DNA of 50,129 bases, taken from NCBI RefSeq assembly GCF_016433145.1, contig NC_058133.1, positions 250,630,020 through 250,680,148 of the forward strand, written 5' to 3'. Source of the DNA: Gracilinanus agilis (taxonomy: Eukaryota). Positions 4,169-50,129 of this stretch are shown one piece after another. Numbering within the stretch: the stretch's first letter is position 1; each line of letters starts with the position of its first letter. Made by a program: the position numbers and the translations under genes. The notes beneath the pieces are model-generated. The model was not told the DNA's origin, did not search any database, and saw only the letters and a list, made by a program, of their open reading frames with translations.

Positions 4169-4593
4169 GATCCAGGACAATTCTGAGGGACTTATAACAA
4201 AGAATGCTATCCACCTCCAGAGGAAGAACTGTTGGAGTCAGAATGCAGATGAAAGTATGGAATTTTTCAATTGTTTATTTGTGTTTATGTTTTGGAGTTT
4301 CGATTTTATAAGATCACTCACTTACAAAAGTGAAAAATGTGGAAATGTTTTGCATGATAATACATGTATAACCCAGATCAAATCTCCTGCCAGCACTGAA
4401 AGAGGGAAGGGAAAGGGGTGAGAGAGATCAGTTTGATCATATAACTTAGGAAAACTTGAGTGGAGATTTGTTACATGTAATTGGTAAAAAATAAAAATTA
4501 AAGAAATAAGGGATGGGGCAGCTAGATGGCTCAATGGATAGAGAGCCATGCTTAGAGATAGGAGGTCCTGGATTCAAATATGACCTTCGACAC

Positions 4594-5418
4594 TGTTATG
4601 AGTAAGATTAGATTAGCTGATTATTAGGTATTGATTATATATTGATTAGGAAGTACCTAGCAGGAAGGAGCTGGAGCTGGGAATTCCAGGTTGGAATGAA
4701 GGAGGAGGAAGTCTGTCTGTGCCCTGTGGGTGTGGACTCCATTAGTGGTGGGCAAAACTGTTGCCAGCCTGGGAGACCTCAGAGCAAAGGACACCCTGCT
4801 TCCTGATTTCCCCTGGGATCCTGTGTGGTGTGGCATCTAAGAAAAGGAAAAGATCTACAGAGCCAAGAGAGGAGGAGTAGTTTAAAAACTGGAGGACAGT
4901 GCTTCAAGCAGAACTCTCTCTACTTGGTACCTGAGATCATCTTGACTCCTGGCATCCAGAGACCATCAGTGGATTGCAGTGAGAATCCCAAAGTCACAAA
5001 GCCCTAACTGTACTCAAGCCTGGCAGGTTCCAGGTTTGAGGCAGAAACCCAGAGACTCCATTTATAGTTCCTTGGGCCCTGTTAGTTTAGATCACTAAGC
5101 AAGAGTAGAATAAGTCCTCCCATTGCCCTGTGGTTTTATCCCTTAGATTTTAAGTATAGAAATCCTTTCCCACCTTTTAGTCTAACATAATTAAAGCTGT
5201 TAAGTCCCTTTTACCTTGTTAGCCTGTTACTATACTCTGGTCTAGTGGAAGCTGGGTGACAGTTAAGATCAACTGCCATTCCTGTGGAGATCCGGTAAAA
5301 CTCTGGTCTCTTCATCCTGGTCCAGTCTCTCATAAATCCTAGAGTGTGTTCCCACAAACCACTTAGTTTTATTGTAATATCCCTGGTGACCCCATTACCT
5401 CACTTATATTTTCCTACA
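4594..5418. mobile_element. Solo LTR (ERV1-like) inserted into a SINE
   Basis: TG at 4594-4595 and CA at 5417-5418, flanked by 4-bp direct repeat ACAC (4590-4593, 5419-5422); the SINE head (4514-4593) resumes after it and ends in an A tail near 5507. Confidence 0.7.
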
Positions 5419-6478
5419 ACACTTACTAGACACTCCTCCATTGTCTAGCCCTTTCTACAACTAATACACAGTATTGATTCCAAAATGGAAGATAAGGGTT
5501 TAAAAAAATATGAGTGATTAAACAACACTTTATGGAAGAGGTGGCACCTGCACTGGACATTTTAAAGAAACCAAAATTACAGACAGATAGGAGTACAGAA
5601 GGAATGCATTATAGGCATAGGAGATAGTCTAGGAGAGTTCACAAAGGCAGGAACTAGCAAATTGTTCAATTTTCCTGGATTATAAAGTTAGTTATGAAAA
5701 TAGTAGTATGAAATAATGCAAAGCCAGTCAAAGAGATAGCATTTTCTCTTACAGATGTTAGAGTGCTTCTTAAGGTTTTTGTGCCAAGTTAGGAAGATTA
5801 TTTAGGCAACTGTGTTAAGATGATTGAAAGGAGTTGATAAAGAGAATCATTGATGAGTTTAATATGCTTTCCAAACAATTCGCATTTATAGGACACATTT
5901 ATTTGGAGGCATCTGAGGAGTACTTTCTTGTGGAGTGAAGGCATACTCATCTGTGCCTTGCTGAGAAAATATTTTTTTCATTCATTCATTCATTCAATTT
6001 GTGTGAGTTGGAATGGGTAGCTCTCCAGAGGGAATGCCAAACAGGAAAAAAAAAAAACCACACACAAAAAAATATAGGCCAAGATAAGGCAGAGACTGAA
6101 TACTAAATGCTCCATGACTGCCTAAGGGGACAAGTTGGTGAAAGCTTGGGAAAAGTAAAATATTGGTTTTCTGACTTCTAGCTTTGAGAAAGAACATACA
6201 CAGTTCTAAATTCTCTTCAGATCTCATAAGGGTGAAAAAGACTCTGGGAAGAAACCAATATGTAGAGGATCCAGCACCTTAAATATTTCCCTAATCTGAG
6301 CTTGCTATCCTAGCTATTTCCAGGAAATTTCCTTTTGGATGAACCTAGATACCTCATTATCAAAGGAAGAGCTAATTTACTCTATTGTCTGGTATGTATC
6401 TTTGTATCTTCCTTAGATTACTATGAAAGTATTATCGACTTAGATAAAGGAGTTTATTTGCTATTTGTTACATGTAAT

Positions 6479-7270
6479 TGTTATAAATAAAAATAAAACT
6501 GGAAGCTTATTACCAGATTTATAAGCATTTATTAGTAAAGAGAGAGAAAGATAGAAAAAAAATCTTTAAGCCTTTCTAACTTTAGGCCAAAATCTGGTCC
6601 TCCATTGCAGCCCGCCTCCATGCTACCACCTGTCAGAGACCGTGGAGTGAGATGAGAGAGAGAGGGAGAAAGGGAGAGAGAGATATGCCAGTCCAGGGTC
6701 AGAGTTAGTTGAAGTCCAGAAGCTGCTTCTTGGGCTGATTTTTTAAACCTGTAACTCCTCCTTCTGTGGCAACATTGTGCTGATTCTGGCTAGACTGGGA
6801 AGCTGAAGTTGGGATGCTGAGGGTCCCCTTGGATTCAGGCCATCAGACAGGACACATGATCTGTGACTCCTATGTCTTGCCACTGGAGTGCATGGGCTCA
6901 AAGTCCCCTACCTCACAAATATTCTTGGTGGAACTGGGATTTGGGAAAGGTATCAAGCCTTGGATATATAGCTTGGAGTATTCCTTCTCCATAAAGAAAT
7001 AAGTAGCTCAGCCTGAACCTAAAAATCACTTATTGTAGACTAATAATATTTAAGGGAGCAGATATAATTCCATCTCGGTGTATAGTTTTGTCTTTCAGAT
7101 GATAACAGAGTAGCCAACCTCTGGCCCCAACATTCTGCTTCCCATTCTGGCAATAATCAAAACCTCTCTTGGAAAAGGGTGGATGGGGACTCCAGAGATA
7201 TCTATTCACTTCTAAATAGACCCATAAGGACACACATATCCTACATGGCCAACACATACATCCCCCTATA
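6479..7270. mobile_element. Possible LTR-like element
   Basis: TG start, antisense AATAAA-type segment (CATTTTATTAG) and GA-rich core typical of opossum LTRs; right boundary uncertain. Confidence 0.3.
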
Positions 7271-7699
7271 CACATATGAAGCACTCAGAGAACTTATGGA
7301 AGTCAGCAACTAGATATGAATATAGATAGAGCTTTCAAATAGCCTGTTCAGTCCTCTAAGAAGGGAAATGAACTTGGAACTGGCATTAAGGCAACTGTTT
7401 GACATTCCTTGAATCCCTAACCCTCCTTCTCTCATAGTGTCATTCTGTGGTTTGGAATTCCCCTCATAAAGCAAACATACTTTGGGATTGCTGAATGAGC
7501 GACTTCTTTCCCATTGAACCTACAACTTCCAAATGTCACTGACTTTGCTCTCCAAGTAGAATAGTGCTCTGGAAATATTTGGAATATTCTAATTTTTATC
7601 CAAGAACCACAGTGTGGGAATAAATCCTCTTATCTCTTTCAAAGGTCTAATCCTGGAACTGTCAAACTTGAGAAGCATTGAACTTTGGAGTGATCCACA

Positions 7700-8095
7700 T
7701 GACAGCACTCAAAGGTGGAGCCACAAAGGAATAATGAAATGGAGGAATTCCATGTAAACTGGAATAACCTCCAGGAATTGATGAAGAGTGAAAGGAGTAG
7801 AACCAGGAAAACATTGTACACAGAGACTGATACGCTATGGTAAAATAAAATGTAATGGACTTCTGTACTAGCAGCAATGCAATGACCTAGGACAGTTATG
7901 AGGGATTTATGGAAAAGAACGATACCCACATTCAGAGGAAGAACTACAGGAGTGGAAACATAGAAGAAAAACAACTGCTTGAACACATGGGTTGATGCAG
8001 ACATGATTGGGGATGTAGACTCGAAAGGACCACACCATATCAATAATATGGAAATAGGTCTTGATAGATGACACATGTCAAAGGTGGAGCCAACA
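7700..8095 (+). mobile_element. L1 3' UTR fragment
   Basis: Same family blocks (GGAATAATGAAATGGAGGAATTCCATG...GAAATAGGTCTTGAT) as other L1 ends in the window. Confidence 0.6.
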
Positions 8096-10017
8096 TTTAA
8101 AGCCCCTCACCATCTGGTTCCCATGTACCCTTCCAGACTGACTTCAGAACATTTTTTGTCAAGCAAAGTGTCCTTACCTGCACATTCTAACTTCTACCTC
8201 CAAGTTTTTACACAGGTAGTTTTCCAGGCCTGGAAAATGCATTCCCTCCGTATCACACCCCTTTTAAGATCCTTCGGTTCCTTCAAGGCTCAGTCTTGAA
8301 GGTAGGTCCCCTTGTCTGTGAATTCTGTCTTGGTCCTCCTAGTTGGAGTTCTGATACCTCTCAAATTATGTTGTATTTACTCATCTATGTAAATGTTGAA
8401 TCTTCACACACACATCTCAGATCAAAAATAATGTAGGCTTATACAATTCTGGTGGCAGTAGAATTGGGAAGGAAGGACTGAACTGGACTTGAGGGACATA
8501 GGAAGAATCAATAGAACTTGGTGATGAGAACAGGAAAGAAGAGAAAAAAGTTGACTAAGAGAGGGATCCAGATATGACTGTGCCTTTGTTAAGTAAACTC
8601 CTTGAGGGCAAGGACTATTTTTCTCTTTGTTTTTATATCCTCAGCATCTAATATCCTGCACATGTACTTCAAAAAAAATCTGTTGATTTGAAATCAGACA
8701 TATTACTTGGGGAGAGGGAATGGTGTGTTCAGCCAAGGCCTGAGCATCTCCAGATTGGATGTTGTTCTTTCATGTCCAATTCTGTGACCCTTTGGACATT
8801 ACTTTGCAAGCCAGTACCATCCATGAGGTTTTCTTGGCAAAGATACTGGAGTGGCTTTCCATTTCCTTCTCCAGTGAATTAAGACAGACAATAATAATAC
8901 ATGTATAATCCAGATCAAATTACCCTCTCTGAGAAGGGAAGGAGACAATTTGTATCTTACAATTTCAGAAAATCTATGTGGAAATTTGTTTTTTATGTAA
9001 TTGGGAAAATAAAATCTTTGAATAAAAAAAAGAATTAAGGGAGACAGAAGTTGTCATTTGCTCAGGATCATCAAACTAGTAAGTGTCTGAGGCCAGATAT
9101 TTTTGAATTAAGGCCTAGCAGTCTATCCACTGAGCCATCTAGCTGCCTATGGTATAAGTAGCCATTTGAGGATGGGGTACTTAGTACTGGGAATGCAATG
9201 AAGTACAAAGAAAAGATGCTGAGCTCTTCTCACTTGGCCTAAAAGGACTTACAGTTTAGTGGAGGTGGGAAAATGGGGAGCGGAAGGAATAGACACATAA
9301 GGGAGAGCATAGGCTGTATTGTTTAAGAGCCATTTAAGAGATTGGGACAATTCAGCTTTGCTTAGTCAGTTGTATATGACTCTTGGTGGCCCCATTTGGG
9401 GTTTTCTTGGCAAAGATACTAGAGTAGTTTACCATTTCCTTCTCCAGCTCATTTTGTTTTAAACTCTTACCTTCTGTCTTAGACTCAATACTGTGTTATT
9501 GTTACCATAAGAGCTAGGTAATAGGAATTAAATGACTTGTTAGGAAGGGTCTGAGACTAGATTGAAACTCAGGAGGATGAGTCTCCCTGACTCCACTGTC
9601 ATCTAGCTGCCTTACTATAGGAGACAAGAAGGGCAGTAGAATTAGAGACCAGGAGCTTATGTCAGGGGAAGAGAATGAAAAGGAAGATACCCAAGATAGG
9701 GTTAATAGGAAGATTAAGATTTAGCAACATAAGAGGCAGCTAATCAGAGTAATAATTCTAAGATGGAAGGTAAGGGTTTAAAAAAAAAAAAGATTTAGCA
9801 ACATGGAGGGATGGGGAAGAGGTCCAAATATGAGCACAAGCATAGAAATGGAATGGTAAGAGCAAAGGCCTAAATGTGGTAATAGAAAAAGAAATTAAAC
9901 CATTTCAGTAGATATGGAAGGTTGGTGTCTGGGAGATAAGGACTGAAAAAATGGGAGAGTCAGATGGTAGAAGATCTTGAATTCAATTCAAATATTTAGA
10001 TCAAGAAATATTAGGGG

Positions 10018-10200
10018 CTGGGGCAGCAAGGTATCACAGTAGATAGAGCACCAGGCCTATAGTGGGGAGGATTTGGGTTCAAATCTGGCCTCAGACACTT
10101 CCTTGCTGTGTGACCCTGGGCAAATCACTTAACCCTGATTGCCTAGACCTTGCCATTCTTCTGTCCTACAATTGACAATAAGATAGAGATAAAAGATGTT
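10018..10200 (+). mobile_element. Older CORE-SINE copy
   Basis: GGGGCAGCAAGG head, GGTTCAAATC B box, CTGTGTGACCCTGGGCAAATCACTT core. Confidence 0.65.
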
Positions 10201-10779
10201 TTTGTTTGTTTTTTTAAAGAAATATTAGGGGCCTACAGATATTAAAAATGACTTAGTTCTCTGTCTTCTAGGTAAACTTAGGAAGGCAGACATATTTACA
10301 AAGGGAATGGTGGAAAAGATCCCAAAAAATGGTGTGATGCTTGGAGAGAGAGATTACTTATGGATGGAGGAGGAGATAAGGGAAGGTTTCATGGAAGAAA
10401 TGATTCACCAGAAAAATTTTAGCTGGTACAAATGTAGGGTTTACTATTCTAGCATGTATAATGTATGCAGGAGGAAAAGGACTAAATAAAATTAGGGAAA
10501 TGAAATGAATGGGTGTAGTGTGACTAAGTCTAGAAACATAGATGGGAAATGATTGCAGAGCCCTCAAATACTAGGCAAGATTTGTATTTTTTTCTATAAA
10601 CTATGGAGGCCAAAGATTTTGAGCAGGAAGACAAGTGTCTTGATTAAATCTTGATTAGGAAGATTACTCTGGCAATGGGGTACAAGATGGATTAGAGAAG
10701 AAAGAAACTCAAGGCAAGGAGATGAGACCAAATGTAATTATCCAGATAAAAAAGTAATGTAGTCTAGTCTGGTGGCAAT

Positions 10780-11473
10780 TTTTTTTTTATCCTGGGACTC
10801 CATTCTAGGAGCATAGGGCCACAACCAGTAGGCAATGGGTCGCTCAGGGTCACCCAGCTGGGAAGTGTCTGAGTCCGGATTTGAACCTAGGACCTTTCGT
10901 CTCTAGGCCTGGCTCTCAATCCACTGAGCTAGCCCAGCTGCCCCTACTTTAGGTTGCAGTTTCTTTAGCAGATGTAGTTTTTACAGGGTGGGGTTGCTAG
11001 CCCCACGCCTAACCCTCCTCCTTTTTTCATCCGGGCTAGGGACCGTCCTTAGCCCAGGAGTGGTAAGGGTGGGCGATAGGGGTCAAGTGACTTGCCCAGG
11101 GTCACACAGCTGGAAATGTCCGAGGCCGGACTGGAACCTAGGACCTCCTGTCTCTAGGCCTGACTCTCACTCCACTGACTCTCACCCCCATTGCCCACCC
11201 TTACCAATCTTCCACCTATGAGACAATGCACTGAAGTACAAGGGTTTGGAAAAAAAACAGCTGGGTGGCTCAGTGGATTGAGAGCCAGGCCTAGAGACTG
11301 GAGGTCCTAGGTTCCAGTCCGGCCTCGGACATTTCCAGCTGTGTGACCTTGGGCAAGTCACTTGACCCCTATCGCCCACCCTTACCACTCCTGGGATGAA
11401 AAAGGAGGAGGGTTGGGTGTGGGGCTAGCAACCCCACCCTGTAAAAACTACATCTGCTAAAGAAACTGCTACC
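10780..11473 (-). mobile_element. Composite SINE/RTE-like insertion containing a 200-bp inverted repeat
   Basis: Poly-T at left end, GGTGGCAAT direct repeats at 10771-10779 and 11474-11482, several SINE heads and an RTE-like segment present in both orientations. Confidence 0.65.
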
Positions 11474-12135
11474 GGTGGCAATAATCATGTATAACTATGG
11501 GAGAAAGGGCTCAACTGGACTTGAGAAACATCGGGAAGAATAAATAGAACTTCATGATTAGATCAGTAGAGAAGGGAAAGGAAGCTCAACTAAGAGGGAT
11601 GAAGGTGCCACAGTCAAATGATGGGAACCCAAGAAGGATAACTACTGTCATTTTGAGAAACCCCATGGTTTCATATTCAGACATCCTGTTCCATTTCTCA
11701 CTTACACACCTCAGGAGTGAAGACTCAATTTTCTTCTTATAACTGGGGTTTACCCATAGGTGGCAACTTTATCTCTCCACTGAAAGTGGGAGCTCTCCAG
11801 AGCTATCTTTCCCCATTATTTTAGATTAAAGACTAGAACACATGAAGGGATGAAAATAAGGATATTTAGTGACGACAGGAGAAAAAAATACCAGGGAAGG
11901 TGAGAGGTATCTGTGTGGTAGGGATATACATGAATATACATCTACCCACATCCACACACACCTTGATTGCTTTAAAACAAAATAATGTCACCCCAACATG
12001 GATTTTCTAATGCCATGGGGAGAATTTTCCAAAGAAAGTTGATTCCCAGAATCTGCAAAACCAGCAAAATCTGGGGTAGCTGGGAAGAGGAAAGCTAGAG
12101 ATGACTCTGGGGCCAGTGTTCCCAGGTGATTTTTT

Positions 12136-14204
12136 TCAGGGACTACTAAAAGGGCTTCTTGGAGGGATAGTATGGGGGTTCTTTCTATCTTTGTTCATTT
12201 GAGTCACTGAATAGAGTAGTGGTGGTGGTATGTGAGTGGGTAGGATGTTGGGTGTGTGCGTGGGATCACTAGATGCTTGATTGTGAGTGACCAGACTGAG
12301 TCAACAGAGAGCCCTTGAAGGTGGAAACAGGAAAAGTCTTGGAATCTTCTCATGGGGGTCACTCTATTAGGAGGGATCTGGACCTGGAGGGAAGAGATAA
12401 AAGGAAACAGGAGGAAATCAAGACATGTTTGCGATGCAATAGAAGATAGTATAGTGATTAGAAGAGCATTTGCCCCACACTCCCAACCCCAGTCCCATTC
12501 CCCCAGCTCACTCTATTATACAGCTAATGAAACCTAGAAATAAAGAGGCAGCTGAGAGGGAAAGGAGCAGGATCCTGGTTTCCCTCAGATCCTGGTGTCC
12601 TGTGGGAAAGAAGGTGGAGTAAGAAGGTTGTCAGGATGCAGCAGGTCCTTTCCTGCCCACTTTTGAAAGGGAGACCTAAAGAGAGGATGGTTAGAACTCT
12701 ATTGGAGTAGGAATTGAATCCCAGATGAGAGTTGGAGGGCTACATGATTGGGTACCCAAGGGGAGCTTCCAGAAAGGGGCAGACAAGGGACTTAGATACT
12801 TGGGCTGACCTGGAAAGCAACGCTTGAGAGCCCAGCATTGAACTTCAACAGCTTTGCACGTGGAGCAGTTGTAGAGAGTAGTTATTCCACCTGCAGGCCA
12901 CAGTGGGGGCTGCAACGTCGGCTAGTGGAGATAGCTTGGGGAGAGCCCTGCCCCCTCTCTCCTAGGGTCAGAGTGGTGATAGCAGCGTAGGAGCAGCCTC
13001 CCAGGAACAGGGATTCCTATTGGGTACTCGCTATTCATCCCTCTCCACCAATCTTAGTTCTCCTCGGAGATCCAAGTGATCAGACTACCCCTTTCCTCTC
13101 AACTCATTTGCTGTATACTCACGGCAGGCAGGAGGGCACAGAGCTGAGAAAAATCAAGAAGAAAACTTTTTGTCTCCAATCCAACACCCTCCCTCTCCCA
13201 CTCCAATGCTTCATAACCTTCAGGGTTCCCCAGGATCTCCCTCTGCCCTTCCCCTATGCCTGATACCTTGCCTCACAGATTCAGGAAGTTTAGTCTCTTG
13301 AAGCCATTGCCAATAGGAGGAAAGGGAGAACAGGGAACCTTTGATTTCTGGGAAAGAGGGCAGCAAATGGTTTGTTCATGAATCTTCTGTTTGGTCCCTA
13401 CTCCAAATCATCATTTCCATTTTTTATCAGTGATTCCAAACCACTCCTTTCCCCCTAGGCTTCCTATTTTTCTCCCCATGCTCCTCCAATTCCCATAGCC
13501 CTCCTGGTCCCCCATCCCTAGTACCCACTTTCTTATTCCCCTTCCCTCTCTTTTCACCATACTTCTTTTCCTCTTCTCTGATTATCACTTCTTCTATTCC
13601 ATGCCTTCTACCCATTATCTTTCCCAATGGTTCATTCTCCATTCTTCATCCACCTAAGATGCCTCCTCCTTTCTCCTCACCAAAGATACTCAATACTCTG
13701 TGTGTCTTCTCTGTGATTCTATTCATGGACACATCATCTGGGGAAGAAGGGAAGATAGGAAAGGGATAGAGAAAGTTTTAGAGATCCTGGAGAGTAAAGT
13801 CCCCCTCCAAATGATATATAATTTTCCTTCATGGATCCTCTGGACCCACATTGAAAGTAGATCCAGAATAATAAGATCCAGGGGAGATCTTAGGAAGAGA
13901 TTTACTGGAAAGGACTATTATATGGAGGTGTGAAGAAAATTAGGAGCTTGAGGAGAAGCATGAAGAACTAGATCCCTAAGAGGCCTGGAGGAGAAGCTAG
14001 AACTAAGACTAGAGGAGAAGATTCCTAGTTCCCACCTAAGGCAAAGGCTGAGAAATTCCAGCTGCTTTTACAGTTTTCCCACTCTGAACTTATCTGATCG
14101 CAGAGATGAGCCACGCGTCCAGAAAGGTCTCTAGAGGGGAGGCGGCAGAAGATACAGGCTTGGGAGGTGCCCAGGCAAAGATAGCCAAGCATTAGGACCC
14201 ACAT
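12136..14204 (-). CDS. TMEM95: Sperm-egg fusion protein TMEM95; 7 exons; last-exon acceptor ambiguous (169 aa ending at 12301 or 218 aa ending at 12136)
   Basis: Exons 14204-14036 (MWVLMLGYLCLGTSQACIFCRLPSRDLSGR...), 13737-13681 (DVSMNRITEKTHRVL), 13347-13267 (SYWQWLQETKLPE), 13143-13123 (LCPPAC), 12890-12810 (TTLYNCSTCK...CWALKRCFP), 12599-12512 (hydrophobic TM segment), then acceptor at 12313 or 12295. GT-AG, phases consistent; signal peptide, CxxC, NCST sequon; synteny after KCTD11. Confidence 0.93.
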
Positions 14205-15410
14205 GAGAACCGGAATGAGGACTTTGGTTGAAATAAGATATAGGATACTGATTCCGTCCACTTTGACTATGGGGCTCTTTATTACTGGGTTCTAGAACCC
14301 CAAGAATATTCCAACTTGAAGGATAGCAGGTGAGTGGGTAGGGTCTCAGAATACAGGGGCGGGGTAGGGGTGGAAATATATTACAGTATAGAAGTCTAGA
14401 TTTCTATAAACCCAGCACCTTACATAACACTGATATCCTTTGGGGTTGTTGGTCAGTGATGCTTTCTATAAGCCTATAAGGGCAAGGTCACTATTAATTT
14501 TCCAGTGAGGGAGTGTAATATTTTAACACAGTGCCTGGCATATAGTAAACACTTAATAAATTCTTGTTGACTGATGGATTGACTGAACTGGCCAGCAGGT
14601 GTCCATCTATTTGGAACAAGAGCCCAGCTGTGTAAATTACTCTGTGGTTCATGAAAAAAGCTGCCTTTTTAGGAGACTGCAGAATAATTGCTGGCCACCA
14701 GAGGGGGCACAGCACAGAAAATCCTGCTCTGATCTTCCACTGCCAAGTAGGGGAAGGGAAGGGAATAAGCAGTTTAGGCACTTCACAGATATCCCATCTG
14801 ATCCTCACAACAACCCTTGGAGGTACATGCAGAAATCTTCCAGCAGCAGCAATTTTGATGGATCCATAGAGAAACTCAAAATATTAGTCAATCAACATGC
14901 ATTTATTAAATGACAACTAAATGCCAAGAGCTCTACTAGGTGATCGAGATACAAAAAGAAATCAAAATAGCATCTCTGACCTTCAAAAACCTTAAGATCT
15001 ATTGGGGGAAATGGCATTTATATATCTTTCACTATTACACTTTTCACTGTTATTGTTTTGACTTGTGATTTCATTGGTATAGAGATCTTCCAGGGAAGGA
15101 ATTCTACCAAATACAGATAAGAATTTGTTTTGCAGCTTCTCAGAGAGGCCCATAGCAATGGGAAAAGCCTGTTTATGGAAGATGAGATTTGAGATCGGAC
15201 CTGAAAGAAGCCAGGAGGCAGAGATGAGGAGGGAGAGAACTCCAGGCAAAGGGAATAACCCAGTGGAAAATGTACAAAGTTGGGAGGTGGGATATCTTTC
15301 AGGGAACAGCAAGAAGTCTAGTATCTTTGAATCAAAGAAAGAAGTGGTATAAGAAAACTGGAAAGGTAGGAAGGGGCCAAGTTATAAATGGCTTTAAAAG
15401 CTAACTAGAC

Positions 15411-15624
15411 GGGGGCAGCTGGGTAGCTCAGTGGATTGAGAGCCAAGCCTAGAGACGGGAGGTCCTAGGTTCAAATCTAGCCTCAGCCACTTCCCAGCTG
15501 TGTGACCCTGGGCAAGTCACTTGACTCCCATTGCCTACCCTTACCACTCTTCTGCCCTGGAGCCAATACACAGTACTGACTCCAAGACGGAAGGTAAGGG
15601 TTTAAAAAAAAAAAAAAAAAAAAA
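15411..15624 (+). mobile_element. Young SINE1_Mdo-type SINE
   Basis: Full-length head and core, 21-A tail, AAAAGCTAACT repeated at both flanks. Confidence 0.85.
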
Positions 15625-16550
15625 GCTAACTGAATTTAGACCCTGGAGGGTTCAAGGGGAGGTGATACTGTCAGATTTGCCCTTTAGGATGATCAATTTT
15701 ATAGCTGAGCAGAGTTTGTGAGGCTGGTAGACCCTCTAGCAGGCTATCTAAATGGTGCAGGCTTGAGGTGATGAGGGCCTACACCAAGTGGGTGACAGTA
15801 TCAGACGACAGAAGGGAGAATATACAAAGATAGAACCAACCAACCAAAGCAAAGGCCTTAGTAGAATGGAATGGGGGCAAGGGTGAGAAATGATGGGACA
15901 TCATATTCCATTATTCTAGCTAGATTTCTGATCTTGGGCTTGAATGAAGAGAGAGAAAGGTAATGAATTTCTCATGCAAGAATAATCAGAAATTGCTCTA
16001 TCAGTTGCTTTCTCTATGAGTCATGTCCCCAGGTCTAGGGGAAAACAATTCAAGGAGAGAAAAAGAGCAAGCAAGGACACAGGTGATACATATAGTTTCA
16101 GAGCAGCCCACCTCTACTTTTGTGTATAGAGTTGTACCTAGGGAAGGGCAAGTGGAACTTTATCTCAAGACATGGATATAGTTAGAAGGATATTCTTCCC
16201 CCTGGTAGTGGTTCAGAGACTACCATCTATTTTCCTCAGGGAAAAATACTACTCTCTCACCTAGTACCATCCAATATGTTCAGACATTCCATCACTGTGG
16301 TATCTTTCTCTTCCTCCCTAGTCCCAAAGAGAGTTGGGTCACTCCCTCTCCTGATACAACTGTATACATGGTCATCCTGTCCTCTGTCACTACTATCTTT
16401 TCTCCAAAGATTTTTTCCCCAAGGTGAAAAGATTCCTACTTCCAACTCTGTTGCATATTCAATTTCCAACACATCTCTTCATATACCCACCCTGACCCTC
16501 TCCCCTTCTCCCACAGATTTCACAAGTTTACAGTATAAAAAGGTTTTACT

Positions 16551-16556
16551 TTTATT
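16551..16556 (-). terminator. Candidate distal KCTD11 polyadenylation signal
   Basis: TTTATT on plus = AATAAA on minus, about 1.05 kb after the stop codon, in an AT-rich context. Confidence 0.5.
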
Positions 16557-17608
16557 GTTTCTTAGACATTTCTTATTAGATATGAACAATAAATAGTAAC
16601 TTTTTCTGAAAAAAAGATCTGTGCAAAATAGAAGAGTAAATATTCCATTTCCTTTTCCTCCTTTCCAATCTTCTTCATAAATTTGTTGTATTGAATTTCT
16701 CTTTCAGCCCAGGGCAATACTATATACACTATAGTGAAACCTAGCATCAGAACCATCGTTATTAGAGCAACCTATAGCTACACAATAATTGCCTCAGAAG
16801 CCCAAATAGGCCCAGAGCTTTTGTCTCCAGGCTCTCTCAGAGACAGAGATGCACAAAGACAGGTTTACCCCTGTTGACAGAGGGCTGTGGATACATTCAT
16901 ATATACACCCTATTGTTCAATAAAAAAATCTACCCATCCATTGGATGCACATAAATGCACACACCCTGTGCCAATCCAGTCATTCCACAACAAGGAACAA
17001 CACTGTAATAGATACTCTCCAAAACAGACCTGGACAAGCCCTGAGTCTGGGAAAGAAGTAAAGTCAGAGATCAAAAGGCAAATGACAGATTCTATTGTCA
17101 TCCAGAGACATATAGCACTACTAATCACAGAGGAAGACTCCCTGCCCCACCCCTCACTCCCTGTCAGCATGAAACATAGGGACAGGGTATGGGATCAGTC
17201 CTTCAATAAGCATTTATTATACCAAGTTTATGGATAATACTTGGATTCTCACAATTCACACCCCCCCCCCCAATTTGGAATCCCTTTTGATATTTTCTCT
17301 TCTCTTCAAGTCTGAGCTTCAGTAGAGGGCCATAAGGTGCCCTCCAAATTTCATAGCCCTTTAGGGGGCTGATCAGAATCCTTAGGTTAGAAGAGAGGGG
17401 AGGGTTGGTTTTCCAATTTTCTATCCCTCCCTAGATTGAAGCTCCAGTCAAGAGATAGACAGGGAGTCCCCCTTAACTCTCACAGCTCCTACCTCTTCCA
17501 AGTCATTCCAGAAAGTCCTAAATCTCTTACAGATCTAAGAGGAGTAGAGATTGCACCCCCCAACTTTATTGACTCTTCTTTTTTTCCCCCAAACCAAGTC
17601 ACTATCCT

Positions 17609-18427
17609 TCAATGTCGGACAAAACGCAGTGATCGAGAGTTGAGCAGGTCCTCAGGGTCAGGGAAGACAGAGTCAAGTCGAAAGCCATGTTCCAGAGCCA
17701 CCTGGAGCACTTCCTCCAGGAATCCAGGTGTTCCCAATACCTCCCGCCTCTCACCTGCCTCTCCTACTACCCACAGTTGTTTCAATCCTAGACGTCGATA
17801 CTCAACCTCCGGGAGCCCTTCTGGGCAGGGAGCCCATTCCAAATGGAAATGGGGACTTCCTTCTCCTCCTTCCCCTTCAGCAACTCCAAACCGGGTCCGG
17901 AGCACCCCAAGACAGGTGGGATCTGTGCAGAAAATATTGGCCCTAAAGGTGTCAACTCTGGCAGCACTGAGTTCATAGTGGTGGGGGCCTCGACGAGCTG
18001 AGAAGTGGACCAGTCGGGGGGTGGCATCCACATCTGCATGGAATAAGGCAGCTGTGACCACCTCAGTTCCCTGAGTTACTTCCAGTTCCCTGAGTGCATC
18101 TAGTAGGGGCTGGATCTGGTAGAAATCAGCCTCGGCTCTCAGGAGAGCTGTCTCCCCATACCCCCTAGGTAAGTCCAGGCAGCCCAGGCGCAGGAAATTG
18201 AGGATGTGACGGAAGGCTTTACCATCCCTGTCGATAAAATAGTAGCTGCTACCCAGGGGACCAGAGTTGGATGGTAGTGCTGCACCCTCTCTGAACATGG
18301 CCCCTAACATTGAATCTGGGAATCGAGTCAGAGTTTCCAGGGTGGTAGCATACAGTGTTCCCCCCACATTCAGTGTCACAGGCCCCCCAAAAGAGGGTGC
18401 CTGGGAAGGCATCGGAGGAGGGGGAAT
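17609..18427 (-). CDS. KCTD11: BTB/POZ domain protein KCTD11 (REN), single coding exon; start at ATT 18427 (272 aa), ATG 18412 (267 aa) or ATG 18310 (233 aa)
   Basis: Translation contains GPVTLNVGGTLYATTLETLTRFPDSMLGAMF, YFIDRDGKAFRHILNFLRLG and the KCTD11 C-terminus DSVFPDPEDLLNSRSLRFVRH*; TGA at 17611-17609; lies directly downstream of ACAP1 as in human. Confidence 0.96.
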   Translation of the reverse strand: MPPPPMPSQAPSFGGPVTLNVGGTLYATTLETLTRFPDSMLGAMFREGAALPSNSGPLGSSYYFIDRDGKAFRHILNFLRLGCLDLPRGYGETALLRAEADFYQIQPLLDALRELEVTQGTEVVTAALFHADVDATPRLVHFSARRGPHHYELSAARVDTFRANIFCTDPTCLGVLRTRFGVAEGEGGEGSPHFHLEWAPCPEGLPEVEYRRLGLKQLWVVGEAGERREVLGTPGFLEEVLQVALEHGFRLDSVFPDPEDLLNSRSLRFVRH

Positions 18428-19199
18428 TTTGAGGAGCACAGGAGATATACTGATGGGAAAGAAGAGTCTGGGTTTCTGGGGTATGGTAGAGAAACTGATT
18501 TGTAGATTCACACCAGATGGCTTTGAGGTAGGGAATAGTTTAGGGGTACCCAGCAGCTACCTCTCTGGCACACCTCAGCAAAATTAGCAGTAGAGAATAT
18601 TTTCAGGGTATAGAAAAATTTGGGGATACAGTACAGTCCTGGGATTGTCCTGTGGCTGGTTCCAAAGACAAAAAGCAGTTTGGGAGTGCGTCTCAGCTGG
18701 TTAGGGATGTTGAACCAAATTAGTGGCAGAGACCAGCTTGTGTGAGATAAACAGCTGGCCTGTTGGTTCAGAAATGCTGAATTCGGAGTACTCCAAGATG
18801 TGTGTGAAGAACTTTTTCTGAGGTACCTGAAGATTTCGTTTCAGGGTTCCAGCCGACAGATGGGCGGGACAGAGGCTGATTTCTGGGTGATCGGAGAGGG
18901 GAAATAGCAATGCAGTCTTTTGGAGGGGAGGAGGAGTCACTTGGTCGCAGTTTCTTCACAGTTCCCAGCAGAAGATATCCTAGAGCTGGCGCCGATATTT
19001 TGGGGAGCAGATCCAAACGTCTAGCGTTTCCAGTTCCCAAGTCAGGGAGTGGGGAGCCAAAGGGAGGCTGGAAGGGGTTGTGACTTCAGGGATGGGGTGG
19101 GGTAGCCAAGCCGTCCCTTCAGTAGGTTTCGGGGCTCGCTCCAAATTCGGCAGGGGTGGGAATGGTCTCAGAGAGCCGATCTGGACCCGGGATTTCGGG

Positions 19200-19440
19200 G
19201 GCCGCGCCCAGGATAGGATCCGCCGGCGTCGGCAGCAGAATGGATCCTCTGCTCTTCAGGAAGTAGAAGTAACAACGCAGACGTGATGGGCCCTTTAAGA
19301 GACAGGCCCGCCCCCTCGGAGCCCTACCCCTCCCTCCCCACCCCCTGCTGCGTCGGCTTGTTCTCCCTTTTGGGGACAAGGGCTGAGCTGGACGGTCATC
19401 TCCCGCCCCCGGGATGGGGAGGGGAGGAGAGAGGGAAAGA
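19200..19440 (-). promoter_or_regulatory. KCTD11 core promoter / CpG-rich region
   Basis: GC box GCCCGCCCCC 19306-19315, TATA-like CTTAAAG on minus strand at about 19293-19299, ACGTG core 19281-19285, local CpG enrichment; about 0.85 kb upstream of the CDS. TSS is inferred near 19265. Confidence 0.55.
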
Positions 19441-20270
19441 CCGAGGGGGAAGAGCTGAATATGGGATGCGGAATTCCCTGGAGGCTGGAGAGGAGGGTGC
19501 GGGGTAGATCCAACGCCCTCCCTACTCCTTCCCCATGCCTGGGTACCCCAGGGGAGGGGAGAGGGCAGTCAGGGAAGACTTCCTTAACTCTCTCCAAGGG
19601 AGGCAATGACTTTCTGGGGGTGGAGGTTTCCCGACATTAGAGGGTCTTCCAACAAAGAGGATTAGCTCGCTCCGAAGTTGTGCAAGGGGACTATTACTCT
19701 TACTAAGGGTTGCTTAGGATGGATGCCTGAATGGCCCCGACAGTGATTCCTTCCTACTTTGAGCCTGGGGCTTGGGCCACTAACACTGAAAGCATCTCGG
19801 GCTGCCTAGGGACACCTGAGTCCAAGGCGCCCAGACGTCCCCTACTCCTAAGGTTCTAAAGAGCCAGAGGTTTTAGATTGCAGTGGACTGAAGCTAATAG
19901 CCTGGGCTCCGGGAAAATTCCGGGGGGGGGGGGGGGGAGGAAAAGAACTCGGAATTCCTGCAGACAGAGTCGCTGAGACATCACATTCCGGGTATCTTGG
20001 GAGGGTGGGGTCAGAGAGACAGGGAACCTCAGCCTTGAAACTCTCCCTGGAAATAATTGGCCTCCTTTCCGTGGCCCCCTTTGGGGGGGGGGGGGTCAAG
20101 ATTTGAGAGGAATAGGAAAAATGTCCCAACCTATGGAAAAAGAAAGCTGGGGCCAGATTCCTGGGTCAGTTGGGTTCCCCTCTACCCCTAAGAGGTAGGG
20201 AAGGCTCACCCATACAGGAGGGAAGGATTGACTGCTCTTCTGGCTAACCTTTCATCAAGTCTATATGCTT

Positions 20271-20460
20271 GGGGGCAGCTAGGTGGCTCAGTGGATTAAG
20301 AGCTAGGCCTAGAGACCAGAGATCCTGGGTTCAAGTTCTATCTCAGATACTTCCTAATTGGTGACCCTGAAGCAAATCACTTGACCATTGCCTAGCACTT
20401 ACCTGTCTTCTGCCTTGGAACCACACAGTATTGATTCTAAGATGGAAGGATGAGGCTTTT
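20271..20460 (+). mobile_element. SINE1_Mdo-type SINE between ACAP1 and KCTD11
   Basis: GGGGGCAGCTAGGTGGCTCAGTGG head, family body and tail. Confidence 0.8.
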
Positions 20461-20463
20461 ATT
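20458..20463 (-). terminator. Candidate ACAP1 polyadenylation signal
   Basis: First AATAAA on the minus strand after the ACAP1 stop (251 nt downstream). Confidence 0.5.
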
Positions 20464-20713
20464 TTTTAAAAATACTCTTACATGTTTCACCCCAGAACTA
20501 AGGGTCTTCTGAAACATCCTGAGCTAGCTATGCCTAGAGTCCCTGAAATCTGCCCCAAATCCCTTAGCTTTTTGTAGGTTTTTCCCCCCCTCCACTTCTA
20601 TCTCTCTCTCAATCCACACCTCTACACCAGTACAGTGGAGACATATTGGTAGCTGAGAAATCATTTTTAAGTGAATGATTCCAAGGGAAGATTGGGGGTC
20701 TAAGTGCTCCAGT

Positions 20714-43990
<23,277 letters not shown>

Positions 43991-44591: not shown

Positions 44592-44597
44592 TTTATT
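44592..44597 (-). terminator. Candidate polyadenylation signal of the I-2 paralogue
   Basis: AATAAA on minus strand 87 nt after the modelled TAG (44686-44684). Confidence 0.55.
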
Positions 44598-44683: not shown

Positions 44684-47600
44684 CTACATCTTCCACTGAA
44701 CAGCGTCCTCCTCCTGACTCCAGCGTAGACGAAGTGTCTCATCTGGGTGATGGGGGGAATTTATGGGGGGTTAGGGTTAGGGAGAGTTATTGGGGATGGG
44801 GCAGGGGCGTAGAATGCAAGGGAATGGGAGTTCATTTATTACTGAACAGAATAACTCCCAAAGAATGAAAAGGAGGCTCCCATCTTCATCTCTTACTATT
44901 GTTATTCTTAATGATGTTACTTTTAGAAAGCCCCATTACACTCTTAAGGCACTTTTACATATATTATCTGTTTTGGTCACAGAAAAATTGAGGCCCAGAG
45001 AGGTAAAGGAACTTATCCAAGATCCAAAACTAGGAAGAGACCATCCTGGGATTTGAACTTGGGTTTTTCTATCTCCAAGTCCAGGGTTCTTTCCACCAAC
45101 CCATAGTAATATTTACAGTAAAGAAAACCTTTCTTCTGTTTACTGTTTTATAAGGCTGATTTGCACATGATATAAACATTGGGGTGGCAGAAGTTCTCTC
45201 ATGCAATGAGAAAGGAAGTCATTGCTGCCCCCCAACCCAGTTTAACTGTGACCTTGCAATTGCAGCATTAGTTCCCCTTCTCCCTCCCAGCATATCTCAG
45301 GTCCAACCCTGCTCTGTGACTCACGCCTTCGTTCGGGCCCTCCCGAGGCCCTCTGACTTTCCCCAGCATCTCTGTCTGGAATCCCCGAGCTCTTCCAGCT
45401 CAGTTCCTTGGTTATCAGCCAGTGACACCAGCCAGACATCACAGGGGACCCACTGCGCTTCTGGGGTAGGGCTGTGCCTGGGAAGTTGGGTGGGGAGGGT
45501 AGGAATCAGACCATGAGTTCTCTGGGCTGTCAGAAGGAAAAGAGGAGGCAGACCCTAGGGGGATCTAGAATAGGGTAATTGGGGGAAAGTTTGAGAAGGG
45601 GTTCTTGGTTGGGTGGGAAAAAAGTAGAAGGGATAGAGTTGGAACTAGAAGTAGGCAAAATAATCAGCCAACAACTGCCTATAGCATGAAGAATGGAGTA
45701 GGGAATGGAATGCATCATGTGATTTCCATTTTTTAGGATTAAAACACAACTGATATTTATGCTTCCATTTATCATTAATATTTCTGTTGGGTTTAAATGA
45801 GCTGCTAGTTGGCACAATGGATAAAGTGCATGGACCTGGAGTCAGGAAGACCTGAGTTCAAATGCAGCCTCTAACATTTATTAGCTATGTGATCCTGGGC
45901 AAATCACTTAGTCCTGTTTGTCTGGGTTTCTTCATCTATAAAATGAGCTGGAGAAGGGAATGGCAAATCACTCTGGTATCTTTGCCAAGAAAATTCCAAA
46001 TGAGATCACAAAGAGTCTGACATGCCTGAAATGACTAAACAACATTATGGCTTTAAATAATGGAAAAGTCTTTAAAACAAACAAACAAAAAAAAAAACCC
46101 AATACATATCTCTGTGGGGAAATAGGGGTGGGGGATGTGCAACAAGGGGCATTAAAAATTTTTTTTTATAAATGTCTACATTTTTAATGGCAGGAAACAC
46201 CAGTCTACTGTTCCTTAGATACTTATTTTGCATCACTAAATATTTGTGTTAAAGGGAAGACTCAAAGCCTCCCAAATACACTCACTAAGGGCATTGATGA
46301 ATCTTGACAAGGGGAAAAGGAATAAGCATTAATACCTACTAAGTGCCAGAAACTGTGCTGTGTCTCTTTCACATATTATCTCATTCGATCCTCTCAACAA
46401 CCCTGAAAGCTATTGTTCCAATTTTACAGTTGAGAAAAGAGAGTCCATGGTCACACAGCTCCTGACTGACACTAAATTTTACATCAGGTATTTCTGATTC
46501 CAGGCACTTCTCTGTCCACTCACTGTACCACCTATAAATGCATGTATATGTATGTGAGTGTGGGAGGAGTTAATGGGAAACATTCCTTAAATGGATATCA
46601 GGAAGGAACCTACCAGGAAGAGGACTGGGGTGGAAAGCAGTGATGGGTATATCTGGGGAAAGCTGGGAAAGTGGAGGGGTTTGGAGAACATAGGGAGTCA
46701 CTTAAGGATCTTCTAGGGAAGGGTAGTGTCATGGGCCCCTCACCAGGCTGAGACTGTGCTATAGTGATAGTCAGAGGCTTCTCTGTAGCCTTCTGTTCTC
46801 CATTGGATGCCTGTCCAGTAAGACCAAGCAGGTGGACTCCCTGGGAGGTCAGGGGCTTCTCTATTACCCAGGTCAATCCAGAGGTGCCTGTAAGGACCCT
46901 GGGGTTCAGATATTGGAAGGCAGGCATCTGACCCCCTAAGCCAATATCTCCACCTTCCACTCCAGTTAGTCATTACCTGGTCTGCAAATCTACTTCCCCC
47001 ATCTATACATTTAGTGAAAGGACCCCAGCTCCCACCCTGAGCCCTAACACTATAAAGTATTACAGCTAGAAGAGACCTTAAGTCACATTAAGTCTAACTC
47101 CTTTATTTAACTCATGACAAAATAAATCAGCCCAGATTACAGAATAGACTCTTGAAGGTCACACACAAAGCAAGTCAGTGCCAGAGCTGGTACTAAAAAT
47201 TCTTGGTCTTCCTGACTCCTAATCCACTGCTTCTCTCACAATTTAGGGCTGCCTCACCATCTCTCAGCTTCTTGTATCCTTTTCTAGATCTGTGGGTTTT
47301 GCCAACTTCAGGTATGTCCCTTTGCTGTAATAGTCCTGCTCTGGTAGGGGCTGGGGCAAGGTGTCTCTCTCCAACCCCCATTCAGAGGTATCTGATGATT
47401 CTTAGATTAACCAGGATCTCCTGAACATCTCTTCCTTTGTCAGATACATTCTACTCCCTACCCTTTTTCTACCTTGGCAGGTCCTAAGTCTTAAGGCATT
47501 TAACTTAAAATCCCTTGTCTAGTCTCATTTGCTTCTCTAATTTTTTATGTTTACACCAACACCTTAATTAACTGTCCCTCTTCATTGGGAAGTACCCTCT

Positions 47601-50072
47601 GAGGTCTTTATTCCCTCTCACTCTTGGATCCTCTACTCTAAAGGGGATCAGGAACATTAGGCCCCCTTCTCTGCCCAGAATCTCTTCCCCACAGAGCTTT
47701 ATAGGAGAATCTAATCTCTGTGAGAGGGGGAGTGGGAAGAAGGGGGAAGAACCATGATGCTCAATACATATATGCTCAATCAATTCCAATGTAGCAAGGG
47801 GTTGGAGTATCCTTAAGAATGGATCCTATAGCTTCATCCCATGCATATTCCAACTCTCTGCCTTCCTCACTTCCCACCCTCATTTCCTCTATCTCATTTG
47901 GGATGTTCTCATTCTTCCCTACCCCACCCTCCAATTAGAGACTGGGGCTTAGACTCAGGACTTGTAGTATATCAGCCAACCCTAGAATTTGTGCCTTAAA
48001 TAAAGATCCTGCTTTGTCTTTTCTCCTGGGGTGGAATTCGGGAGGTCATCAGGAAGTAAGACAAAAAGAGGAATGATGAATTCATAATTCCCATGAGTCC
48101 CTGATACTAATAGCAAGGCTGACTAGCCTCTAAGACTGCTACTAATGCAGTTCTTAATCAATCTCTTTCGTCCATCCCTTTCCCTCCTGTCCCCCTACTC
48201 TTAACCACCACTTTCTGTCTTTCCTTCCTTCTCTAGTTGGGAAATCCAGTTGGGATCTGGGACCACCACCACTTTCTGTCTTTCCTTCCTTCTCTAGTTG
48301 GGAAATCCAGTTGGGATCTGGGACCCTTCCATAGAGGTTAAATGAGCCAGATATTTTCTTGGGAAACCTAGAGAGAACTAACTCACCTGGGGGCTCCTCT
48401 TCATCATCCTGTACAGCTAATTTCTGAGCTTTGAGGAACTTCCCCTCATCATAGTGAGCCTTACGATGCCGCTCAAAATCATTTTGCACTGTGGGATGGG
48501 AGAGAACTAAGCCCTTGGGACCAGTAGTTGAGCCTCACCACCCCTGCCCTACCCCTTGGCTGAAAGTCTCACTTTTTTTAGATGTTAACTTGTCCTTGGA
48601 ACCTGTGTTGTTATCTCCAAACTGAAGAACTTTGGGGTAAAAACTGTCCAATGATGCAAGCCTGGGGGAAGGGGAGTGGGGGGAAGAGAGCACTGAGGGC
48701 CCTGGAGAGAGGGAAGTGGGGATGGGGGTAGGCCCTGGAGAGAGGGAAGTGGGGATGGGGGTAGTGGTGGCAGAGGGCCTCCCAATGGGGAGAGAAAGCT
48801 ACAACTCCCAATATCTCTCAAGGGCAGATGACTCTACCACCAACTGCGCCTTTATATCAGAGCCTAATGGGAGCTGTAGTTTCTTCCATTACATGGGTCC
48901 CTGAAGGGAGTCCCAATGGACCCAAGGGTTGGGTGCTGGCCAGACTCGCCTGGGTCCTTCATCAAGGAGAGCTGAGGCCAAGGAGCCCCCACCTCTCAGC
49001 AAGCGCTTCAGGTGACACTGCCTGTGAGGTCCCTGCTCTCAGATCCTCTTCACTGTCTTCCAGCCTAAGAATGTGGGGTGTGGCAGGGAAGAAAGGTGAG
49101 TGCCTTGGGAAAAAAACAAGCATCTATCCATCCAGACTGATCCCCTCCCCCCCCAACTTCTGGTGACTAGCTAAGATCTTAAGTCTGAAGCCCTAGGGGC
49201 AGGATGGGACCCTGGGGAGAAGAGTAGTATGAGGCTTGTCACAGCCAAGGTCTGTGTCCCGTTTTCCATGTACTTGGTGAATGGGGACCTGTGTTTGGCA
49301 TGTGACCTGCGGTAGGGTGTGCTGGGCTCATCCACCTTCATGAGTCCGTAGTCCTTGCCCAATGGGTGGTATGTGGCCAAGATATTCATCTCATCCCAGT
49401 GTTGGGACTTCTTCCTGGATTGGGAGAATCATGGAGAGGAGTGTCCTGAGTTCCCCTCCAGAACTCTAGTGCTTCCTTTCTCTTGTCAGCCCCCAGCCCA
49501 AGAGATCTTGAGAACACTAAGCTGGGAGTTGGTTTCTAGTATGAAGGATTCCAAGTCCAAAACAGACAACCTGGGCAAGTTAAACTCTTTTATCTCAGCT
49601 TTCTCAACTGAAGTTGGTCCATTCCCTTCAGCTTCAAATCCCTTGATCCTTCAATTTCCCTCACTCCTTTTTTGGACCTCATCTTCCAGGAGTCCTCAGG
49701 GAGTCACCCTCTTCCCTCTCTGCCTATTCCCTCTCCCACGTGGCACGCACAGTTCTTAAGGAATCCCTCCTCTCCCATCTCATCCCAACCTCTTTTTATC
49801 CCTTTCTCTTCCCCATCTCTCCGCTCCTCCCGTCTGCCCCCTTACTTCTCCCCAATGGGGACTCTCTGCACCATAATGGTGCTGGTGTTCTTCAGGATGC
49901 CCCGGGGCCGCTCATCAGTGGAGCTGGAGACTGAACATGGGCTGAGCTCCCCGGAGTGCAAGCTGGATTCGGACAAATGCAGGCTAGCGGCAGGCCCCTC
50001 CTGAGTGTCGGGCGCCGTCACGTGCAGGCCACCACCCCCTCCTGTGGCCCCCACAGCCTCCTGCTTCTCCAT
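44684..50072 (-). CDS. Protein phosphatase inhibitor-2 (PPP1R2/IPP-2 family) paralogue with long C-terminal extension, positional equivalent of mouse 2810408A11Rik; 9-exon model, about 348 aa
   Basis: Exons 50072-49846, 49414-49307, 49064-48993, 48661-48573, 48488-48387, 47350-47258, 46887-46744, 45477-45325, 44742-44684; all GT-AG, summing to 1047 nt in one open frame. I-2 motifs: [49 protein letters not shown]. Strong Kozak at 50072 (A at -3, G at +4). Exons 1-5 are well supported; exons 6-9 rest on splice sites and phase only. Confidence 0.8.
48204..48325. repeat. Perfect 61-bp tandem duplication
   Basis: 48204-48264 identical to 48265-48325. Confidence 0.95.
48698..48763. repeat. Perfect 33-bp G-rich tandem duplication
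   Basis: GGCCCTGGAGAGAGGGAAGTGGGGATGGGGGTA twice (48698-48730, 48731-48763). Confidence 0.95.
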
Positions 50073-50129
50073 CGTGCCCCTCCCCGAAGCCGGGGGCCGC
50101 CCTCAGCTGCCCCGCCCCGCCCCTCCGCC
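49970..50129. promoter_or_regulatory. Edge of a CpG-rich promoter with GC boxes; probable bidirectional promoter shared with NEURL4 beyond the window
   Basis: CpG-dense end of window with CCCGCCCCGCCCC at about 50111-50123 just upstream of ATG 50072; NEURL4 assignment is by synteny only. Confidence 0.6.

Follow-up and report, generated by a model that had tools for sequence, protein, structure and literature searches.

Canonical PPP1R2 (inhibitor-2) contacts the phosphatase PP1 through GILK, SQKW and the HYNE-containing IDoHA helix (PMC11561318). PPP1R2P3/PPP1R2B, PPP1R2P9/PPP1R2C and others are intronless retrocopies of the canonical messenger RNA (mRNA) (PMC3840573). In the opossum Gracilinanus agilis, a stretch of 50,129 nucleotides (nt) from contig NC_058133.1 (RefSeq assembly GCF_016433145.1, positions 250,630,020 to 250,680,148), hereafter called the window, carries a locus in which elements of this kind are distributed over several exons. 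This raises the question of whether the locus is a genuine gene, where it came from and what its product might do. We consider it quite probable that it is the opossum orthologue of 2810408A11Rik, an ancient sister of PPP1R2 located upstream of ACAP1, whose product would dock on PP1 via inhibitor-2 elements, carries C-terminal modules and occurs in alternative forms.

Family membership and PP1-contact elements

The exons were translated and searched singly against Pfam, where the IPP-2 family (PF04979) has a gathering cut-off of 25 bits. Exon 2 alone reached 59.8 bits (E=5.8e-16) and exon 5 reached 28.3 bits (E=3.2e-6, profile positions 99-130). When exon 2 alone was used as phmmer query against the full library, 624 family members were retrieved. 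The top match was XP_007483261.1, named 'protein phosphatase inhibitor 2-like isoform X2 [Monodelphis domestica]', with 269 amino acids (aa). The window exons 1-5, 8 and 9 are identical to this protein at 264 of 269 positions, leaving five differences. XP_007483261.1 (98% identical to the window model) scored 111 bits over profile positions 1-130. On the structural side, exon 2 matched residues 43-76 of chain I in PDB entry 2O8A with 30 of 34 residues identical (E=4.2e-16), and XP_007483261.1 aligned to inhibitor-2 residues 8-165 of the same entry (E=1.8e-26), a range that spans GILKN, KSQKW and HYNEG. The motif set together with these Pfam and PDB E values places the locus in the IPP-2 family far beyond chance.

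All motifs named in a preliminary description of the locus were found, namely, GILK (aa 58-61), KSQHW (78-82), PSTPY (106-110), DSEED (115-119) and HYDEG (177-181) as well as KVLQF and RLRW. GILK is of the SILK type, lies N-terminal of the RVxF site and aligns to GILK of 2O8A chain I. The flank of KSQHW is identical to the inhibitor-2 flank, with a single K-to-H change compared to KSQKW. HYDEG aligns with HYNEG of 2O8A and is predicted to be helical. AlphaFold2 monomers of XP_007483261.1 and of the echidna protein were largely disordered and of low confidence, with a predicted local distance difference test score (pLDDT) of 55-56, and were used for helix propensity only. For XP_007483261.1, short helices were predicted in three places, the LAERLA segment, the HYDE helix (163-179, pLDDT 70-75) and the Trp-rich motif (215-222); for the echidna protein, both HY-type modules were helical and a further short helix was placed at the Trp-rich motif (256-268). 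Judged from these models, the protein would be intrinsically disordered with short helices.

Gene structure and product forms

The locus is a genuine intron-containing PPP1R2 paralogue gene. It has several exons and runs on the minus strand from window position 50072 to 44684, with canonical AG/GT splice sites and intron phases 2,2,2,1,1, followed by 1,1 (Table 1). Translation starts at the ATG at 50072 and the stop codon TAG (44686-44684) ends exactly at 44684. The start and RPRGILK of exon 1 are conserved across an alignment of 25 orthologues. The acceptor of exon 4 lies at 48661 (ttcccccag/GCT) and is preceded by 19 pyrimidines in 20 positions before the AG; the segment it adds, RLASLD or RFATMD, is present in all six orthologues compared. 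Exons 7, 8 and 9 are backed by orthologous proteins. Exon 7 is bounded by ttacag/GC and CTG/gtgagg, and its GLxWVIE motif is also found in eutherians. Exon 8 matches Monodelphis XP_007483261.1 at 96%, its W..WL..K motif being conserved in eutherians, echidna and caecilian, and the C-terminal end of the exon 9 type (ETLRLQWTQEEE.RQWKM) occurs in many eutherians.

Exons 1-5 and 9 encode 218 aa, exons 1-5, 8 and 9 encode 269 aa, and the addition of exon 7 gives 317 aa. These three forms are the ones that orthologues appear to support: the Monodelphis RefSeq isoform X3 (218 aa) corresponds to exons 1-5 and 9, and koala isoform X2 and the wombat protein include exon 7, so that their equivalent in the window is the 317-aa form.

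Table 1. Features of the window on the minus strand, with amino acid identity between this opossum and Australian marsupials; intron segments included in other species' models serve as control
Feature	Positions	Strand	Length	Phase	Identity	Content
Exon 1	49846..50072	(-)	227 nt	2 out	52-66%	Start MEKQE; Gly/Ser-rich variable N-terminus; SILK-type motif RPRGILKN
Exon 2	49307..49414	(-)	108 nt	2 to 2	91-97%	Degenerate RVxF (SQHW) with flank; GSK3-type Thr (DEPSTPY)
Exon 3	48993..49064	(-)	72 nt	2 to 2	91-95%	LEDSEEDL (CK2-type acidic Ser); VSPEALAE
Exon 4	48573..48661	(-)	89 nt	2 to 1	89-92%	Ends TSKK
Exon 5	48387..48488	(-)	102 nt	1 to 1	81-84%	IDoHA-type helix, HYDE replacing HYNE; ends DDEEEPP
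Exon 6 (optional or relic)	47258..47400	(-)				Acceptor 47400 or 47391; in-frame TGA 47266-47264, two codons before the gtgagg donor
Exon 7	46744..46887	(-)	144 nt	1 to 1	89-93% (koala X2, wombat)	GLxWVIE motif (here GLTWVIE); ends TITIAQSQP
Exon 8	45325..45477	(-)	153 nt	1 to 1	72-80%	Trp-rich motif, then variable tail
Exon 9, coding part	44684..44742	(-)	59 nt			Ends in TAG
Introns 2 and 5, read-through		(-)			~70%	Crude neutral control
AATAAA polyadenylation signal	44592..44597	(-)				86 nt past the stop; by sequence inspection only
ACAP1 start codon	43988-43990	(-)				~0.7 kb downstream of the paralogue, same strand
ACAP1 ArfGAP exon	~35.3 kb	(-)				Pfam match
KCTD11	18511-17609	(-)				
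TMEM95 exons	between 14261 and 12691	(-)				

Some further features of the locus were observed. In each of exons 7 and 8, two minus-strand frames are free of stops, and only one of them has orthologue support; the open stretches are 47087-46743 and 46969-46613 around exon 7, and 45554-45324 and 45505-45245 around exon 8. Two perfect (100%) tandem duplications were seen, one in intron 5 (48204-48325, two copies of 61 base pairs (bp)) and one in intron 3 (48698-48764, two copies of 33 bp) whose end is 37 nt upstream of the acceptor of exon 4. Both must have arisen very recently or else be artefacts of the assembly. Intron 7 contains a marsupial-type element resembling a short interspersed element (45780-46050, recognised by eye only). 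The segment upstream of the ATG (50073-50129) is GC-rich with Sp1-like GGGGCGGGG boxes on the minus strand.

Annotated orthologues and the mouse counterpart

A word search with XP_007483261.1 returned 639 relatives, comprising marsupials, both monotremes and many eutherians labelled 'uncharacterized LOC...', and rodent proteins named 'RIKEN cDNA 2810408A11 gene'. By tree and gene order (see below), the locus is the opossum orthologue of rodent 2810408A11Rik, an already known, poorly understood gene. The mouse counterpart was assigned by its gene name and by the clade of the other rodent proteins. It was described in 2012 with a ~47-kDa band and an IPP-2 domain spanning aa 150-277 (PMC3597327). 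Its mRNA was found in testis only, and the protein in round and elongating spermatids as well as in the acrosome and post-nuclear region of sperm, the acrosomal signal being gone after capacitation (PMC3597327). In a literature search, neither functional work on the paralogue nor newer names were found beyond this paper, and the 2013 survey of PPP1R2 and its retrocopies (PMC3840573) leaves the locus out.

The long C-terminus had been called novel in the preliminary description. The extension itself is real and conserved, but it is part of a RefSeq model in Monodelphis and of a gene whose mouse counterpart is published. It had also been put at about 150 residues, with an N-terminus some 55 residues longer than that of inhibitor-2; the values obtained here are 70-118 residues past the IPP-2 domain and ~45 residues over inhibitor-2. 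As the mouse counterpart was published as testis- and sperm-specific, the sperm role that had been proposed has already been partly examined. Nearness to TMEM95, which had been brought forward for this role, is no argument, as the two genes are ~30 kb apart and separated by ACAP1 and KCTD11.

In the koala models, exon 8 continues past its donor and the last exon is translated in a different frame (MRHFVYTGVRR...). Since eutherians and Monodelphis share the ETLRLxW...WKM ending, the koala reading of the C-terminus is probably a prediction artefact.

Origin and age

The canonical PPP1R2 of gecko was mapped on its genomic locus. Its six coding exons measure 116, 108, 78, 101, 183 and 65 nt and its intron phases are 2,2,2,1,1, which verifies on an actual gene the phases and the 108-nt exon 2 that the preliminary description gave for PPP1R2. 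Introns 1-4 are located at the same residues in gecko PPP1R2 and the window gene. The shared intron positions and phases identify the window gene as a DNA-level duplicate, as had been proposed, and exclude a retrocopy. A retrocopy origin was ruled out by 7-8 introns at ancestral positions and phases.

A maximum-likelihood domain tree was calculated with IQ-TREE and rooted on hagfish; a long-branch warning concerned the amphibian and hagfish rows only. Support is given as bootstrap/SH-like approximate likelihood ratio test (SH-aLRT). The mammalian paralogues (monotreme, marsupial and eutherian, including 'RIKEN cDNA 2810408A11 gene') formed one clade (99/97) with a marsupial subclade (100/99), and were joined by amphibian proteins with 100/99. 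Canonical PPP1R2 proteins from sharks, sturgeon, frog, reptiles and mammals grouped together (93/87), apart from the paralogue clade to which the group of the window gene belongs.

The gene order NEURL4-type, IPP-2, ACAP-type was found in tammar, Petaurus and the caecilian Rhinatrema, where the gene is named 'PPP1R2-like'; the wombat flank reached the ACAP-type neighbour only. NEURL4 lies outside the window and its placement is known from the flanks of the tammar, Petaurus and caecilian orthologues. More amphibian members are named in axolotl, Pleurodeles, Lissotriton and Discoglossus. Tree and caecilian synteny together indicate that the duplication is older than the split of amphibians and amniotes. 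Dated in this way, it predates the tetrapods and the gene is at least tetrapod-old. The preliminary description was right about an old duplicate, but its date before the therian split was too modest.

In gecko, PPP1R2 is located between a lipocalin gene (APOD-like) and an ACAP-type gene on the same strand (gecko locus 4492-9376, 10001-29089, 38917-39089). Both gecko PPP1R2 and the paralogue are found directly upstream of an ACAP-type gene. Since such a gene adjoins both copies, the paired neighbours suggest a block duplication, possibly within the early vertebrate genome duplications. A more far-reaching and tentative proposal is that the gene is a PPP1R2 ohnologue copied with its ACAP neighbour, and that its ancestral form had two tandem HY-type helices, each able to block the active site, and a Trp-rich C-terminal helix. 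If this were true, one molecule could engage PP1 by either helix, via splicing, or bridge two PP1 molecules, and marsupials would represent a natural knock-out of the second helix.

Concerning the immediate surroundings, the first coding exon of ACAP1 lies ~0.6 kb past the AATAAA of the paralogue, whose 3' end adjoins the ACAP1 promoter region. In other marsupials, NEURL4 is arranged head-to-head ~2 kb upstream of the paralogue, and the two genes may have a promoter region in common.

C-terminal modules and the second HY-type helix

The alignment of 25 orthologues defines a modular layout. A variable N-terminus is followed by RPR(G/S)ILK, the best-conserved SQHW/PSTPY block, VTPEALAERFA..D..PKVLQ and helix 1 (DF.KHRKAHY.EGKFLK). 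After helix 1 come an insert present in eutherians only, helix 2 (QRKEYYSKGRYLRS), GLxWVIE, SGWCQWLVTK.LSW and ETLRLQWTQEEE.RQWKM. The C-terminal modules GLxWVIE, W..WL.TK and ETLRLxW...WKM are all present in the window gene, in exons 7, 8 and 9, respectively.

Helix 2 resembles helix 1. In a profile-profile comparison, the two matched in register over 29 columns (83% probability, E=8.5e-6), and by this measure helix 2 arose from helix 1 by internal duplication. The echidna helix 2 gave a weak Pfam IPP-2 match (positions 90-129, E=0.0072); the window exon 6 peptide and the elephant helix 2 gave no match to Pfam IPP-2. When read in the phase of exon 5, window exon 6 matched the helix-2 profile in hhalign with 87% and E=3.8e-6. 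On this profile match, exon 6 is orthologous to the second HY-type helix (KEYYSKGRYLRS) that eutherians and monotremes carry. The window gene lacks an intact second helix, a lineage difference with which its orthology is still compatible. The exon 6 frame stops just before its donor, its acceptors are the weakest in the gene (9-10 pyrimidines in 20 compared to 12-19 in 20 elsewhere), and the basic N-terminal half of helix 2 (QRKE) is replaced by a Pro-rich PLPEQD. The module was found in most eutherian and both monotreme proteins and in none of the marsupial predicted proteins retrieved. Because of the in-frame stop and the weak acceptors, the second helix appears to be disabled or made optional in this genome.

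Predicted isoforms of other mammals differ in their helices. Of helices 1 and 2, camel X2 has just the first and camel X3 just the second; elephant X1 combines both and elephant X2 lacks helix 1. The two homologous helix exons may be used alternatively.

Constraint

Exons 2-5 and exon 7 are more conserved than the read-through of introns 2 and 5 (Table 1), and judged by this crude comparison the PP1-binding core and exon 7 appear to be under purifying selection. The N-terminus and the tail of exon 8 do not seem to be clearly so.

Proposed function and alternative readings

Since XP_007483261.1 aligns over all three PP1-contact elements of 2O8A, we infer that the most likely function is that of an inhibitor-2-like PP1 regulator in male germ cells. 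The protein would dock on the PP1 catalytic subunit through its SILK-type motif (GILK) and SQHW and lay the HYDE helix over the PP1 active site. It could act as PP1 inhibitor or chaperone in post-meiotic male germ cells, as mouse expression suggests. A GSK3-type Thr is kept in PSTPY, as is one CK2-type Ser, and the C-terminal modules might give localisation or a second partner. Alternative splicing would lead to the 218-, 269- and 317-aa forms, the ancestral second helix exon being disabled or optional. In canonical PPP1R2, PP1 binding is lost when HYNE is mutated, and the 2O8A structure shows the helix occluding the active site (PMC11561318).

Several points weigh against this function. The PP1-contact elements carry substitutions (HYNE to HYDE and KSQKW to KSQHW), and a basic segment takes the place of the acidic CK2 cluster that precedes the helix in inhibitor-2 (SSGEEDSDLSPEE). 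Identity in exons 1 and 8 (52-80%) is at or below that of the intron control, which indicates that parts of the protein are weakly constrained. No published test of PP1 binding or inhibition was found for the paralogue clade, the mouse paper being confined to expression and localisation. Moreover, canonical PPP1R2 is itself now seen as a holoenzyme stabiliser and not as a plain inhibitor (PMC11561318).

It is possible, though we would not expect it, that the paralogue binds PP1 without inhibiting it and serves as holoenzyme stabiliser or metal chaperone, as is now proposed for PPP1R2. Such a role is compatible with docking through the inhibitor-2 elements and differs in the outcome for PP1 activity. 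It is favoured by the flank after SQHW, which is the most conserved part of the paralogue with invariant columns and which in PPP1R2 forms a composite site stabilising other PP1 partners (PMC11561318). Another alternative concerns the use of exon 6 via 47400 or 47391, resulting in a 244-aa protein with two tandem HY-type helices or in a poison exon that leads to nonsense-mediated decay. The exon follows exon 5 in the correct phase, has a good donor (ATG/gtgagg) and encodes YYSKGTYL, which is identical to the eutherian consensus YYSKGRYL in seven of eight residues; many other eutherian models without the HY.EG pattern yet keep YYSKGRYL. However, given its weak acceptors, the PLPEQD in place of QRKE and its absence from every marsupial model, we regard the use of exon 6 as doubtful. 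A decaying gene on the way to pseudogenisation, with open frames as mere remnants, is highly improbable. The stop in the ancestral helix-2 exon, the fast-evolving N-terminus and exon 8 tail and the perfect tandem duplications in introns 3 and 5 could be read in its favour, but in eight exons the frame is intact and the splice sites are canonical, exons 2-5 and 7 exceed the intron control in conservation, the start, stop and AATAAA are conserved or present, and the gene has been kept from amphibians to mammals.

The same low likelihood applies to the gene model of the preliminary description, which had nine exons, a frame of 348 aa with exon 6 in a frame other than that of the helix, and KVLQF and RLRW as candidate docking sites of the RVxF type. 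The frame itself could be reproduced (1047 nt with the stop at codon 349, exon 4 at 48643-48573 and exon 6 at 47368-47258). It is mechanically open, its exons 7-9 agree with the supported model, and the columns of KVLQF and R-L-x-W are conserved among the aligned orthologues. Two of its splice choices, on the other hand, lack support. The exon 4 acceptor at 48643 conflicts with all orthologues, which support 48661. The exon 6 acceptor is purine-rich (9 pyrimidines in 20) and, when six orthologues were mapped by tblastn, none of them aligned to the resulting peptide, whereas the other frame of exon 6 matches the helix-2 profile as described. The koala, wombat and Monodelphis models skip exon 6, and an open stretch of 37 codons is expected by chance in ~17% of cases ((61/64)^37). 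As for the docking sites, the RVxF consensus requires Val or Ile where KVLQF and RLRW carry Leu. An inhibitor-2-like PP1 regulator encoded by the three orthologue-supported forms is the reading that we prefer.

Comparison with known systems

Sperm maturation and motility depend centrally on the control of PP1gamma2, whose endogenous inhibitors are only partly known. Human spermatozoa reportedly contain two PPP1R2 isoforms, including a retrocopy product. The window gene represents a conserved, germ-line-type relative of inhibitor-2 that is absent from the main evolutionary survey of the family. The analysis adds an age of at least tetrapods, a probable joint duplication with ACAP, a putative duplicated helix in the ancestral protein and its apparent disablement in the opossum lineage. 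This context sharpens the choice of constructs for PP1 binding and leaves the basic reading as a known family unchanged.

Compared with the mouse 2810408A11Rik group, the window gene falls in one clade with the Jaculus, Cricetulus and Phodopus proteins of that name and shares with them the IPP-2 core, a long N-terminus before SILK and a C-terminal extension. The rodent and eutherian proteins differ in being ~400-470 aa long, with an N-terminus of ~130 residues, the eutherian insert and an intact second helix (KEYYSKGRYLRS), whereas the opossum forms have 218-317 aa and lack a usable second helix. The PPP1R2 retrocopies belong to the same inhibitor-2 family, but are intronless in contrast to the 7-8 ancestral introns of the window gene. 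With canonical PPP1R2 (PDB 2O8A/2O8G), the gene has in common GILK, SQ(K/H)W and its flank, the PSTPY Thr and the HY(N/D)EG helix, the residues at which introns 1-4 are placed, all five phases, and an ACAP-type gene downstream. It differs from PPP1R2 by ~45 extra N-terminal residues, the absence of the acidic CK2 cluster before the helix, KFLKAQK instead of NIKLARQLI after HY.EG, 3-4 extra C-terminal exons and its position in a separate clade (100/99).

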